From the NCBI GenBank assembly GCA_002269645.1, contig NIVC01001794.1, positions 1-64,000 on the forward strand: a stretch of DNA of 64,000 nt. Direction: 5' to 3'. Under the pieces are notes generated by a model. It ran no database searches and had not been told where the DNA came from. It saw only the letters and a list, made by a program, of their open reading frames with translations. Shown in pieces: positions 1-51,460 of the stretch. Each line of letters opens with the position of its first letter. The stretch's first letter is position 1. Origin of the DNA: Macrostomum lignano. Its lineage: Eukaryota. The translations under genes and the position numbers were made by a program.

Positions 1-900
1 AACTACACCACTGGCCTCAACTGCCACCACTGACACAACTGCCACCACTGACACAACTGCCACCACTGACACAACTACACCCACTGACACAACTGCACCA
101 CTGACACAACTACCACCACTGACGCAACTACACCACTGACACAACTGCCACCACTGACACAACTACCACCACTGACACAACTACCACCACTGACACAACT
201 GCCACCACTGACACAACTACCACCACTGACACAACTGCACCACTGACACAACTACCACCACTGACGCAACTACCACCACTGACACAACTGCCACCACTGA
301 CACAACTACCACCACTGACACAACTGCCACCACTGACACATCTACCACCACTGACACAACTGCCACCACAGACACATCTACCACCACTGACACAACTACC
401 ACCACTGGCCCAACTACCACTACTGACACAACCGCCACCACTGACACAACTACCACCACTGACACAACTGCCACCACTGACACAACTGCCACCACTGACA
501 CAACTACCACCACTGACACAACTGCCACCACTGACACAACTACCACCACTGACACAACTGCCACCACTGACACAATTACCACCACTGACACAACTACCAC
601 CACTGGCTCAACTGCCACCACTGACACAACTGCCACCACTGACACAACTGCCACACTGACACAACTGCCACCACTGACACAACTGCCACCACTGACACAA
701 CTACCACCACTGACACAACTGCCACCACTGACACAACTACCACCACTGACACAATTGCCACCACTGACACAATTACCACCACTGACACAACCGCCACCAC
801 TGACACAACTACCACCACTGACACAATTGCCACCACTGACACAACTACCACCACTGACACAACTACCACCACTGGCTCAACTGCCACCACTGGCAGAACT
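1..900 (+). repeat. 18-bp coding tandem repeat (ccaccactgacacaact[g/a]) encoding a TATTDT mucin stalk
   Basis: Directly visible, about 50 units. A few single-base indels shift the frame. The minus-strand VVSVVA and plus-strand PPLTQL ORFs are off-frame readings of this repeat. Confidence 0.95.
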
Positions 901-3744
901 AACACCAGTGGCACAAGTATGTTTTCAATATTATTTAAAATATAGTATGTCCGTATTAAATTTGCCTGCATATAGTTGTTTAAAATCAGATATTTACAAA
1001 GAAAATTTTATTGTGAGAAAAAGAGCTTGCTAGTGTCCAGATCGCAGTAGCCGATATACACTGGCTTGTCCAGCACAACATTTGTCTTGAGAATGTGCAC
1101 TAGAACTATATGTGGATCCTCATTGAAAATCATCTGCTCGCGGAACGCTGGCTTGGCCACAGGCTTTCCTGCATAATTAACCAGCCCACTAGGTAGTCCA
1201 CTTGCTTGCGAACATTCTCCATGGTCTTTCTAAATAAAAAAAGACCATGGTCTAAGTCTTTGTTGAACTTATTGTTGGCCTTTTGCACGACGCTCCATGC
1301 GGTAGATAATAACTTGCGGTCGAGTGGTCATGATTACCCAGCCACTGCCATTGCGTAGGTACTTCTCTATCCGGCTGAGGATAGTCTGCATGTCGTCAGA
1401 GAAGTAGCGCTCCTCCTCACTCCGGATAAGAGAGTGGACCTTAGCAGCAAACCAGGCGGTGGTTCCTGGCGGTTCCTGGCGGTTCCTGGCGGTTCCTGGC
1501 TCACGTTGATGCTGGGTGATCAAGTTAATGAAAGCTTGACGAGTGTTTTCCAACACATTCCTCGGGTCTCCATATGCACTGGCCTGGTAAAATCGGGACC
1601 TGCCATTAAACGCCCAAGCACAACTTAAGATACATAATATATGTTACCTAGTAGTCCTTGTAAACGCCTCCTTGATCAGTTGGAAATGAATCGTTGGGAG
1701 TCATCTAACTCAAATAGTGCTGGTATCGCAGGGCATACCCCATATATAGTGCTCCTCAATGCCCTCGATTACTGATGACTCGCAGAAGTCCCAAGTTATT
1801 TCGCATTTGCATTTTTGTTTTATGTTAAATTTATTGTATTAGATTTTATCTAAAATAAAAAATCTATGCGGCCCTATGAGTCCTGGTTGCTTTATTTATA
1901 AAGGGGTATTGGAACCTCTCGAGTAATAAAATCCCTTCCCCACATTACTCGGAAATTCGAGGAAATCACTTCAAATGCTTTCTCGACCAATAGAATCTCT
2001 TTACCCTCTCTACTCGAAAATTCCAAGCAATCGGACTCTCTACCCATTGACCGATCACATTGAAACTCTGTCTTGCGTGTCACCACACGCGGGTAGAGGA
2101 TACTCACCAATGGACACTCATTCACATTTCGATGTCCACCGTTGGACACTCACATCTCGAAACTCACCCTTGGGCACTCACCCAGGCATTCCGCTGTCCG
2201 ACCCGTCATCTGGCCTGCTCGACCGGCTTGCTCGACCCTACCCCTGGGCTTTAAACCCAACCCCACCTCTGACCTCGCCGACCCCACTCCTGGGCCTGCC
2301 CGACCCCACCTCTGGGCCTGCCCCACCCTTGACCTACACCACTTCCGGCCTACCCCGCTTCGCCTCCGGGGCTTTCTTATCGCTGATTGGCTCCCCCTCG
2401 CTGATTAGCCAGCCAATCAGCGACGTGGGCCAGACTGTACCATTTTCCTACTACTCATCTCAACCTTGAGGAGTTTTATTCTTTTGAATCTGTTTCGGTC
2501 ATAGCAAGGTTAGAATTATTCACTCTCTGTGCCTGTGGGGGTTGGGTTGGCCCTGATGGGTGCGAATCGCATGACAACCGGCCCTGGCCAATTTTCTTGG
2601 CACACAAACCCCAAATGACTGCAGCAGCAGATGGAATCCAATCAATGGTTCGTGACGCGAGAGTCAGATGCATTCATTACTCAGCTCAAATTTTACAACT
2701 GTCCTTAAATATTGTCTAAGAGGTGAAATCACCCGCTGCTTTTACACGCGCAGACTCGAACAGAACCACAATCAGCCAGCCGACTACCTCGACGCTGCTG
2801 ACGACCACGCCTTCAAACCAGAACGGCACAGTTGTGAACCCTGACACAATTTTCGGTCTGCAGATGTGGCAAATCATTGCCATCCTGGTTGGCGCCGCGG
2901 GCGTTTTCATCCTCCTAGTGATCATTTCCGTCAATGCGCGCTGCTCCATCCGCAACCAGCGCCTCCGTCGGGCTAAAAGAACCGCCAGGCCGGCACCGCC
3001 ATCGCAGCATCCGCCACCCTCCAGGCAGCAGTCGCAACATCCGCCACCCTCCAGGCAGCTAACGCGACAACAACCATCGCTGCCACAGCCGCCTCCCAGG
3101 CCAGATTTTCTCCGGGCTTCGCCGTATCTAGCGTACAAGCCAGCGTTTGTGCTTGACGATTTCACTGCAGTGAGCTTGCGGATATTGTCACAGTTCGTTT
3201 GTGACAGAAGAAGGGCAGAGAGACAGAGGCGTGTACAGTGCCCCTGACTGTCTTATGGTCAGGCATGCACATTCTCTGTGCCTTGGGGAGTACCAAGCAA
3301 ATTTTTAATCTTTACCAAGTTCAGCGTGTAGCTCTGAAGTTAAATACTTGAGTTAGTTACTTGGACACTACCTACGGCATTTGATGCAGTATAAACGAAA
3401 ATTGCATAAAGGAAACAGATAAAACTTCAGAGCCACAATCCCAGTCAAGCATTTTTAAACAATCAATCCACGGCTACTACAAACAGAGGCTATGCAAGCC
3501 ACGAGGAGCTGAAAGCAAGTTTCCTGTAGATCGTATAAGTAGAGAGGCGATGGCACACAGGTACACAGAAGCTATATCTGATTCATAATTCACGAAGCAC
3601 TTTATTCCCAATTTCCAGCCTCCGCCACCGGCTTGGCCTCCGCCGCCCTCGTTCAGAACGGCCGCCCCGTCTGTGTACACCCTGCCCTCGCCTCAGGCCT
3701 GGCCGGAGCGAGAATATACCATGAATATGCCAAGATACTTCTGA
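1..3744 (+). CDS. 3' part of ADAM-like metalloprotease copy 0: Thr-rich mucin stalk, single TM helix and Pro-rich cytoplasmic tail (5' end outside window)
   Basis: Exons are <1-916 (TATTDT repeats ending ...GRTNTSGT, donor gtatgt, phase 1), 2754-3169 (acceptor cgcag; NSNRTTISQPTT...VVNPDTIFGLQMWQIIAILVGAAGVFILLVIISV TM helix, then RNQRLRRAKR and PPxP runs; donor gtgagc, phase 0) and 3619-3744 (acceptor ttccag; PPPPAWPPPPSF...MPRYF*). Phases are compatible. The 18-bp stalk repeat is the same as in copies 1 and 2. The catalytic part is not in the window, so the ADAM assignment is by paralogy. Confidence 0.75.
1020..1560 (-). mobile_element. Degenerate Polinton/Maverick (adintovirus-type) protein-primed PolB remnant inside an intron of copy 0
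   Basis: The minus strand, with frameshifts, reads IEKYLRNGSGWVI, ...ANNKFNKD..., TMENVRKQVD and KPVAKPAFREQMIFNEDPHIVLVHILKTNVVLDKPVYIGYCDLDTSKL. These match from memory the pPolB motifs GSGW, KNxFEKD..GKTMENVR and LNKPIYVGxxILDLSK. Confidence 0.7.
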
Positions 3745-50900: not shown

Positions 50901-51460
50901 CTACAGCTACAAGTGACTTAACCCTCTACACAAGTGATAACCACTACACAAGCGAGCCGAGGTCTTCAGAGTCTGTCAGCTCTACAAGCGCAGCGAAAGC
51001 TCCTGAAACTACAACTACAAGTGAGTCAACCCGCTACACAAGCGAGCCGACATCTCCAGAGTCTGTCAGCTCTTCAAGCGCAGCGAAAGCTCCTGAAACT
51101 ACAACTACAAGTGAGTCAACCCGCTACACAAGCGAGCCGACGTCTTCAGAGTCTGTCAGATCTACACGCGCACCGAAAGCTCATGAAACTACGAGTACAG
51201 TTACAAGTGACTCAACCCGCTACACAAGGGAGCCGAGGTCTTCAGAGTCTGTCAGCTCTACACGCGCAACGGAAGCTGCTGAAACTAGGAGTACAGCTAC
51301 AAGTGATTCAACCCACTACACAAGCGAGCCGCCATCTCCAGAGTCTGAAAGCAGTGTGAATCCTGATGAAGAAGTCGCTTTGAAGAGCTCCGAGTGCTTG
51401 CTGGCTTTTGAGTTTGCATGCTTTCTTGGAGTCGTCGTGTCGCTTGGATCCATCATCTAA
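41946..51460 (+). CDS. ADAM-like metalloprotease copy 3 with a giant mucin stalk and GPI-signal-like tail, about 1,890 aa (frameshifts near 50420-50720 are probably sequence errors)
   Basis: There are 14 exons with the same phases as copy 1: 41946-41952, 42028-42202, 42525-42665, 42739-43030, 43109-43177, 43246-43409, 43535-43622, 43711-43865, 45154-45334, 45987-46214, 46716-46927, 47008-47179, 47276-47459, 47857-51460. Motifs include [11 protein letters not shown] and CIMN. The protein ends [34 protein letters not shown]. Confidence 0.88.
42295..42380 (+). repeat. ~22-bp minisatellite (accggtagaggactagaggatc), inverted partner at 47465-47730
   Basis: About 4 units lie in intron 2 of copy 3. 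The reverse-complement units (gatcctctagtcctctaccggt) lie in the last intron. Confidence 0.85.
43866..45120 (+). repeat. 47-49-bp intronic minisatellite, about 26 copies
   Basis: Unit is gtgagagctgagctggctacaacc[a/g]caccgcactcgatcccac(ac)acta. It begins exactly at the 5' splice site. Confidence 0.95.
46361..46648. repeat. (CTGT)n microsatellite
   Basis: Directly visible. Confidence 0.95.
47465..47730 (-). repeat. ~22-bp minisatellite, inverted relative to 42295-42380
   Basis: Directly visible, about 12 units decaying rightwards. Confidence 0.85.
47900..51350 (+). repeat. 90/96-bp coding tandem repeat (30-32 aa; [30 protein letters not shown])
   Basis: Period 90 (for example cgaaagctcc at 48391 and 48481). 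Roughly 38 units lie in one exon. Confidence 0.95.

Follow-up and report, generated by a model that had tools for sequence, protein, structure and literature searches.

A tandem cluster of ADAM genes in Macrostomum lignano with a conserved head and predicted minisatellite-encoded stalks

Results

Two complete ADAM genes and two partial copies

We analysed a 64,000-nucleotide stretch of DNA (the window) from the free-living flatworm Macrostomum lignano, the species to which the nearest named proteins in homology searches also belong. It carries a tandem cluster of ADAM metalloprotease genes whose shared head is probably followed, after the EGF-like exon, by stalks of very different length. The stretch is eukaryotic in character, with GT-AG introns, short exons and abundant microsatellites and minisatellites. 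It holds two complete ADAM genes (copies 1 and 3), the 3' end of another (copy 0) and a rearranged pseudogene fragment (copy 2), and a six-frame scan of the window returned three intact HExxHxxGxxH sites, all on the plus strand (9509, 25313 and 43753). An earlier reading of this DNA (the original prediction) had counted four same-strand paralogs; two of them are complete genes, but copy 0 is present as a 3' end only and copy 2 is partly inverted. Judged from sequence, the cluster consists of lineage-specific, meltrin-type ADAM genes of the ADAM12/9/8-like branch of MEROPS M12B.

Positions 1-11288 are 97.6-98.9% identical to the terminal part of contig NIVC01002017.1 (Mlig_3_7, GCA_002269645.1), and this part (200670-212621, locus L003) was used as the Mlig_3_7 version of the copy 0 locus. 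The cluster also reaches upstream of the window: on NIVC01002017.1 a conventional ADAM, P0121 (Mlig004569g2), and an extra copy 1-like head lie 9-25 kb before the copy 0 stalk. The extra head, in locus L002 (165064-192120), may be copy 0's own head, split off by a retrotransposon in intron 11. The idea that L002 and a further paralogous M. lignano locus, L001, are homeologous loci was dropped for L002, since it sits upstream of L003 on the same contig and is part of the same extended cluster.

Table 1. Positions of the ADAM copies in the window and exon lengths in nucleotides (nt) of the complete genes; TM, transmembrane
Feature	Position	Strand	Remarks
Copy 0 stalk exon, 3' part	1-916	+	TTDTTA array; ends at phase-1 donor ACAA/gtatgt
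Copy 0 TM exon	2754-3169	+	phase-1 acceptor cgcgcag/AC
Copy 0 last coding exon	3619-3744	+	PPPPAWPPPP...MPRYF, stop; in frame from the TM exon; matches the P0002 C-terminus
Copy 1 gene	7568-13689	+	14 coding exons, continuous frame, product of 800 residues
Copy 1 exons 1-5	7568-7580 (alternative end 7574), 7660-7834, 8275-8415, 8492-8783, 8860-8928	+
Copy 1 exons 6-10	9031-9191, 9284-9371, 9467-9621, 9711-9891, 10801-11028	+
Copy 1 exons 11-14	11491-11699, 12830-13001, 13090-13273, 13355-13689	+
Copy 1 exon 8, zinc site and Met-turn	9467-9621	+	HEIGHNLGFEH, CIM
Copy 1 exon 13, EGF-like	13090-13273	+	phase-1 end; ADAM22 alignment runs through the EGF domain
Copy 1 exon 14, Thr-rich stalk, hydrophobic end and stop	13355-13689	+	in phase with the EGF exon
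Copy 2 equivalents of exons 7-9	25108-25577	+	exon 7 is 25108-25195; past the first 63 nt of exon 9 the remnant enters a (ACAGACAGAC)n tract
Copy 2 equivalent of exon 11, inverted	25970-26178	-	96% identity by blastn, minus strand
Copy 2 EGF exon (28298-28481) and stalk exon (from 28563)	28298-28850	+	both spliceable
Copy 3 gene	41946-51460	+	14 coding exons
Copy 3 exons 1-5	41946-41952, 42028-42202, 42525-42665, 42739-43030, 43109-43177	+
Copy 3 exons 6-10	43246-43409, 43535-43622, 43711-43865, 45154-45334, 45987-46214	+
Copy 3 exons 11-13	46716-46927, 47008-47179, 47276-47459	+
Copy 3 exon 14 as assembled	47857-50702	+	phase-1 acceptor, about 31 units of 30 residues, stop at 50700-50702
Copy 3 frame-break zone	50399-50751	+	three consecutive units of 87/88/88 nt, with 1-2-nt deletions
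Copy 3 remainder of the array, other frame	50717-51460	+	247 codons, no stop, hydrophobic end
Lengths of exons 2-7, copy 1/copy 3			175/175, 141/141, 292/292, 69/69, 161/164, 88/88
Lengths of exons 8-13, copy 1/copy 3			155/155, 181/181, 228/228, 209/212, 172/172, 184/184

Copies 1 and 3 share a conserved ADAM head

Spliced models were assembled by hand and then checked by translation. Copies 1 and 3 have the common 14-exon structure that had been predicted, with GT-AG at all junctions, matching exon lengths and identical phases. The first coding exon is tiny in both (ATGGC.., then gt). At L001, the gene model of 797 residues, produced by RNA-seq-guided annotation (PMC5730564), begins at the ATG homologous to the start of copies 1 and 3, which makes AAAA/GTAAGT the better exon 1 donor in copy 1. 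By inspection, the products open with a signal peptide-like sequence (MAGKSALTLLCLTCLAISASG in copy 1 and a comparable start of 18 residues in copy 3).

Three of the Pfam families expected for an ADAM were matched in both products: Reprolysin (PF01421) over its full length (3.4e-38 in copy 1, 1e-35 in copy 3), Disintegrin (PF00200) over profile positions 1-75 of 75 (3.8e-19 and 1.8e-19) and ADAM_CR (PF08516; 7.5e-15 and 2.9e-17). EGF was reached only below threshold and only in copy 3, where exon 13 aligns with EGF_Teneurin (2.6e-4, 21.4 bits against a cut-off of 24.3); exon 13 of copy 1 matches no EGF family. In a PDB search, copy 1 aligned end to end with structures of P-III snake-venom metalloproteinases (1.5e-62), and its residues 194-676 aligned to the ADAM22 ectodomain, through the EGF domain of ADAM22. 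End-to-end alignment of the head extends to the RVV-X, VAP1 and ADAM22 structures, and identity to ADAM12, ADAM8 and ADAM9 is 28-38%. The order of putative prodomain, M12B protease, disintegrin, cysteine-rich and probable EGF-like domains is shared with the meltrin-type ADAMs (ADAM12, ADAM9, ADAM8, ADAM19, ADAM28) and the P-III enzymes, as are the HExxHxxGxxH site and the Met-turn.

Both complete copies keep the catalytic Glu, the three zinc-binding His residues and the CIM Met-turn, in line with the intact motifs claimed for them; the zinc site of copy 3, like that of copy 1, fits HExxHxxGxxH and is followed by CIM. On these residues, catalytic competence of both proteins is plausible. About 40-50 residues before the catalytic domain lies the motif RC[HR][YS]K[VI]PPR, with a single Cys, common to copies 1 and 3 and the conventional M. 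lignano ADAMs P0002 and P0121, which may be a cysteine switch.

The heads of copies 1 and 3 are old duplicates kept under purifying selection. The ratio of nonsynonymous to synonymous divergence (dN/dS) between them is 0.21-0.37, with dS of 0.6-1.2 outside exon 10, and dN/dS between copy 1 and its L001 homologue is 0.27. Exon 10 departs from this pattern: it is 97.8% identical between the two copies (dS 0.04), against 59-83% (dS 0.6-1.2) for the remaining exons. It lies in a gene-conversion tract (copy 1, 10628-11398, plus strand; copy 3, 45808-46587, plus strand; 93% identical) that comprises the disintegrin exon 10, flanking intron sequence and a (TGTC)n tract. A separate feature of copy 3 is a 49-bp tandem array of 26 copies (43866-45118), which fills most of intron 8 from the donor of the HExxH exon; the counterpart intron of copy 1 has 89 nt.

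Copy 1 ends in a short stalk and a hydrophobic segment

Exon 14 of copy 1 follows the EGF exon after an intron of 81 nt and codes for 111 residues. It begins with GPVATTATPTRAW and continues in TTATTG-type repeats (18-nt units; about 68 residues, 59% Thr), after which come a polar spacer, a terminal hydrophobic segment and the stop. The post-repeat sequence reads ...LSPDDGVNCGDQLGAAVSSIIFMTLSTLIIVLKLH up to the stop, and the C-terminus itself ...GAAVSSIIFMTLSTLIIVLKLH; the end is composed of NCG or DDG, a spacer of 9-13 residues, the hydrophobic IIFMTLSTLIIVL and then KLH.

The same EGF-to-stalk join is made by two independent models, P0125 (UniRef A0A1I8FWR5) and, in its copy 1 section, the chimeric P0279. 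The model at L001 leaves about 226 residues for exons 12-14, compared with 229 in copy 1; with a TM-plus-tail ending it would total about 870-885 residues. By this reckoning its length fits a copy 1-type ending and not a TM-plus-tail ending. The alternative origin of the hydrophobic tail as a read-through of copy 0 intron-like sequence was rejected, the alignment giving only about 25 nt of weak similarity.

Copy 0 carries a predicted long stalk before a TM helix and a proline-rich tail

The window contains only the 3' end of copy 0 (1-3744), any ADAM head of which would lie beyond it. The link of this fragment to an ADAM comes from its TM and tail sequences, about 82% identical to those of P0002, an 887-residue M. 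lignano ADAM; the TM exon alone shares 82.6% identity with P0002 residues 694-841. Within this exon, a short linker rich in Ser and Thr precedes the TM helix IIAILVGAAGVFILLVIISV, which scores 3.17 on the Kyte-Doolittle scale, and a tail with many PxxP motifs follows; the Pro-rich tail is about 130 residues long. In P0279, transposon integrase sequence stands before exons 12-13 of copy 0, which are similar to their counterparts in copies 1 and 2.

The stalk exon is an array of 18-nt period (50.8 copies by TRF) coding for TTDTTA. Homology links it to the copy 1 stalk exon (GPV[A/G]TTATPTRAWTT...), and it forms a symmetric phase 1-1 cassette. In the window its Thr-rich frame has four breaks, each a 1-nt loss (CC to C), with 17-nt units beginning at 82, 117, 224 and 637, so that just the last 90 array codons share the frame of the TM exon. 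The same exon in L003 (125-1426) consists entirely of 18-nt units and is fully open over 434 residues, 69% of them Thr. There it begins gatttacag/GACCTGTGGGC, 81 nt past the donor of the EGF exon, and one uninterrupted frame over four GT-AG exons leads from the end of the EGF domain through the 434-residue stalk, the TM helix and the Pro-rich tail to the stop. The stalk of more than 300 residues with TM helix and Pro-rich tail that had been predicted is thus recovered, intact in L003 and broken in the window. The intron insert of copy 0 (920-2465) has no second occurrence in the window, L001 or L002.

Copy 3 carries a 3.6-kb array of 30-residue repeats

The array of copy 3 has a main unit of 90 nt (30 residues) and is unrelated to the 18-nt arrays of copies 0, 1 and 2. 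Its units of 72, 90, 96 or 108 nt code for a Ser/Thr/Pro/Glu-rich 30-residue repeat, with 24% Thr, 23% Ser and 9% Pro over 948 residues. Exon 14 lies 397 nt 3' of the EGF exon, with matching phases; it has no in-frame Met, and a stop closes its frame three codons before the acceptor, so it cannot be a separate gene.

The frame is intact for 2.5 kb and then meets deletions in the units starting at 50399, 50576 and 50664. These give rise to the stop, and the hydrophobic end of the array can therefore be reached only with frame correction. Of the predicted stalk of about 1,200 residues with a hydrophobic end, the 3.6-kb array stands, but not as one open frame. Searching with the copy 3 head gave no copy 3-type protein among homologues that could serve as independent sequence, and tblastn found no other TM or tail exon downstream of the EGF exon.

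Copy 2 is a decayed remnant

Copy 2 is a dead, partly inverted remnant and not a gene. Its equivalent of exon 8 has lost the acceptor while retaining HExxH, and in that of exon 9 the acceptor has changed from cag to ctg and the exon ends after 63 nt at a microsatellite. No equivalents of exons 1-6, 10 or 12 were detected in the window. In the stalk exon a 10-nt deletion takes out the position of the copy 1 stop codon. The short stalk with hydrophobic end that had been ascribed to copies 1 and 2 is recovered in copy 1 (68 residues).

Long stalks are absent from the ADAMs surveyed

We took the distance from the last ectodomain Cys to the TM helix as linker length. Among 78 ADAM homologues from a first search the median was 16.5 residues and the maximum 41. 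For a second survey, P0002 served as query in an exhaustive HMMER search against 1.84 billion cluster representatives; in the 88 best-scoring ADAMs with a clear TM helix the median was 24 and the maximum 95. The statement that canonical ADAMs lack long stalks agrees with both limits, and the architecture was not found to be common in ADAM orthologs, either among the homologues surveyed or in the literature searched. Typical linkers (median 16-24 residues) compare with stalks of 68 to about 1,200 residues here. As for the membrane end, copy 0 keeps the TM helix and PxxP-rich tail of typical ADAMs, whereas copies 1 and 3 have no cytoplasmic tail.

The 95-residue maximum belongs to M. lignano itself: P0127 (Mlig004074) has a Thr/Ala/Ser-rich linker, but not a long tandem array, before a normal TM helix and tail. 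The Mlig004569 proteins P0002 and P0121, of the same species and cluster, are 52-54% identical to copies 1 and 3 and have TM/tail exons 82% identical to those of copy 0; their linker is about 40 residues, with no repeat array and a normal TM helix and tail. M. lignano therefore leans to Ser/Thr-rich spacers, while nothing in the sample matches the long tandem-repeat stalks and tail-less hydrophobic ends. The open literature that we searched describes no ADAM anchored by glycosylphosphatidylinositol (GPI) and no mucin-stalked ADAM, and nothing relevant was found on Macrostomum ADAMs or Mlig004569.

Other features of the window

A transposon-like insertion lies 3' of copy 1 (14051-17643), bounded by long terminal inverted repeats (14051-14547 and 17209-17643, 89-100% complementary). 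It holds an open reading frame of 469 residues (15048-16457) with a Cys-rich N-terminus, whose sole Pfam match, DUF1280, is weak. The interval from copy 1 to copy 2 contains two 151-bp tandem arrays in opposite orientations (22266-22908 and 23386-24293). A short dispersed repeat occurs in both orientations in intron 11 of copy 1 (11918-12054 and 12498-12630) and near copy 2 (28121-28203 and 32529-32655). A single-exon frame of 371 residues at 31240-32355 matches nothing in Pfam and contains about six hydrophobic segments; it may code for an orphan multi-pass membrane protein or be open by chance. About 5.4 kb of alternating tandem arrays follow (33225-38645), with units of 23 bp (AAACATTAAAGAGCCACCATGTC) and 18 bp (TCTGGGGGATGCTTGCTA), and an interstitial telomere-like (ACCCTA) x 9.5 tract, the complement of TTAGGG, stands at 39747-39803, about 2 kb upstream of copy 3.

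On the minus strand, 58185-62792 is a gene for a UFD2/UBE4-type U-box ubiquitin ligase (Ufd2P_core up to 2e-60, plus U-box), one open reading frame of which contains a 16/35/51-bp tandem repeat (61151-61531). A search of the window for tRNA genes gave none. Poly(A) hexamers after the stops are uninformative, at a background of about 2 per kb.

Discussion

Taken together, these observations point to a tandem ADAM cluster with a conserved head and a diversified post-EGF module built from coding minisatellite exons, a reading to which we give a probability of roughly 0.7. The head would run from a signal peptide and short prodomain through the zinc metalloprotease, disintegrin, cysteine-rich and EGF-like domains. 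Its EGF exon, ending in phase 1, would be joined to a minisatellite exon starting in phase 1, of 18-nt units (TTATTG/TTDTTA) in copies 0-2 and of 90-nt units in copy 3, and expansion or contraction of the array would set the stalk length, at about 68 residues in copy 1, 434 in copy 0 and 950-1,200 in copy 3. In copy 0 the stalk cassette would stand before the ancestral exons for the TM helix and PxxP-rich tail. The stalk exon of copy 1, and that of copy 3 once frame-corrected, would run instead into a short hydrophobic segment and a stop, giving a tail-less anchor. The stalks are presumably heavily O-glycosylated and would act as extended, stiff spacers, by analogy with surface proteins on mucin stalks.

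Several observations weigh against this reading, some of them through the specific alternatives discussed below. The exon joins of the window copies are predicted from genomic sequence and gene models. The Pfam propeptide family (Pep_M12B_propep, PF01562), which the original prediction also expected, is unmatched at E<=0.01 in copy 1, copy 3 and P0002. Between prodomain and catalytic domain (residues ~160-195 of copy 1, ~160-193 of copy 3) there is no RxxR proprotein-convertase (furin) site, in a place where the conventional paralogues P0002 and P0121 carry RRRR. The absence of the site bears on how copies 1 and 3 would be activated, and together with a prodomain too diverged for PF01562 it sets both copies apart from other meltrin-type ADAMs.

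The tail-less anchor of copy 1, and of a frame-corrected copy 3, would most likely be a GPI anchor, as far as its layout can tell: the N-terminus has a signal peptide, and small residues (NCG, DDG) are followed by 9-13 spacer residues and then by a run of 15-21 hydrophobic residues at or near the C-terminus, with just 0-6 residues after it in the two copies. The strongest competitor, which we think less likely than not, holds that these ends are type I TM anchors with nearly no cytoplasmic tail. Copy 1 does have KLH after its hydrophobic end (...IIVLKLH), with a basic residue near the terminus, and at the end of copy 3 the simple rule finds no canonical omega site, the pair of small residues at omega and omega+2 being absent. 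Both facts speak for TM anchors and against GPI signals; the overall GPI-like layout speaks the other way.

A second question is whether the frame breaks in the arrays are real. As assembled, the copy 3 stalk stops at 50700-50702 and the hydrophobic end sits in another frame, which counts against an anchored copy 3. Taken at face value, copy 3 would encode a secreted ADAM-mucin of about 1,640 residues without anchor, ending at 50702, and the cluster would mix secreted and anchored forms. The deletions also fall in the same alignment columns of neighbouring units, a pattern that copying of a mutated unit, for example by unequal exchange, would produce, and the head of copy 3 is still under purifying selection. 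We nevertheless consider real breaks unlikely. All 10 frame breaks in the arrays of the window are small deletions, with no insertion and no nonsense substitution, and nonsense substitutions are likewise missing from the 302 + 847 + 247 repeat codons (about 1,400). The four comparable deletions of copy 0 are absent from L003, and in the ML2-derived P0279 the stalk of copy 1 has a different set of shifts again. These three lines make assembly error the likelier source of the copy 3 breaks. The frame breaks of the window are thus most likely consensus deletion errors, as is demonstrated for copy 0 and would by extension apply to copy 3.

Least probable of the three alternatives is that only the short stalk of copy 1 is coding and that the copy 0 and copy 3 arrays are coding-like minisatellites, skipped, intronic or lying in decaying genes; copy 0 would then be expressed like P0002 and P0121, and copy 3 would be a pseudogene or have some other ending. 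In its favour, these closest conventional relatives splice the EGF exon straight to the TM exon, the intron between them being array-free and 300-490 bp long, and omission of a phase 1-1 cassette keeps the frame. The arrays in the window carry frame breaks, and each is open in two of the three frames by base composition anyway, which makes an open frame weak evidence of coding. Simple and tandem repeats make up about 15% of the M. lignano genome (PMC5730564). Against these points stand, for copy 0, the good acceptor 81 nt past the EGF donor, the phase-matched donor, the fully open frame in L003 and the homology to a copy 1 stalk exon that gene models use, and, for copy 3, an EGF exon that ends in phase 1 with no alternative TM or tail exon downstream by tblastn, so that we regard skipping of the arrays as improbable. 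The relatives without an array do argue that the long stalks are recent, copy-specific expansions and not a family-wide design. The proposal of a lineage-specific family accordingly survives as a cluster with variable stalks, but not as a family-wide trait.

The stalked ADAM layout is real at the level of gene models and unusual for ADAMs. Any function, such as the sheddase activity, the placement of heads at different heights or the epidermal, adhesive or reproductive roles of the original prediction, would be conjectural. What is new is the stalk and anchor architecture, as read from these models, and not the ADAM family itself. ADAMTS7 and ADAMTS12 offer an analogue, an M12B protease with an O-glycosylated Ser/Thr-rich mucin/proteoglycan region; they differ in being secreted, in having thrombospondin repeats and no EGF/TM module, and in placing the mucin domain between blocks of those repeats and not near the membrane. 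A functional head on an O-glycosylated Ser/Thr-rich stalk is found in CX3CL1 and CXCL16, with TM helices, and in DAF/CD55, with a GPI anchor. The design resembles that of the stalked ADAMs, and as the heads are unrelated the resemblance is convergent. GPI-anchored metalloproteases exist in MMP17 and MMP25. To our knowledge, the mucin-stalk layout around ADAMs is known only in substrates, such as CX3CL1, and not in the protease itself.

In the canonical view, the ADAM ectodomain sits a few nanometres above the bilayer, cuts near the membrane and is regulated by the cytoplasmic tail. A bolder version of our proposal, which we hold tentatively and think rather doubtful, is that flatworm-specific ADAMs use the minisatellite as an evolvable spacer, holding active heads off the membrane by about 70, 430 and 1,000 or more residues, with a switch from TM helix and tail to a GPI-type anchor. 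If true, these would be the first GPI-anchored, mucin-stalked ADAMs, with an ectodomain freed from cytoplasmic regulation that could act in glycocalyx or mucus.

The locus also bears on annotation. Repeat-bearing genes such as the stalked ADAMs are often dropped or mis-fused in M. lignano annotations: the public models P0001 and P0279 are chimeric read-throughs that fuse the copy 0 tail, copy 1, intergenic repeats, copy 2 fragments and a transposon integrase. The GenBank set left out transcripts overlapping repeats, and the stalked ADAM family is consequently under-represented in databases.

For the evolution of surface proteins, the cluster is a clear example of how coding minisatellites and exon-phase compatibility can yield new architectures within one tandem cluster. 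If the genes are expressed as modelled, an ADAM head would tolerate mucin stalks of hundreds of residues and tail-less anchoring, and the copies would form a natural series for the effect of membrane distance and anchor type on the substrate choice of ADAMs.

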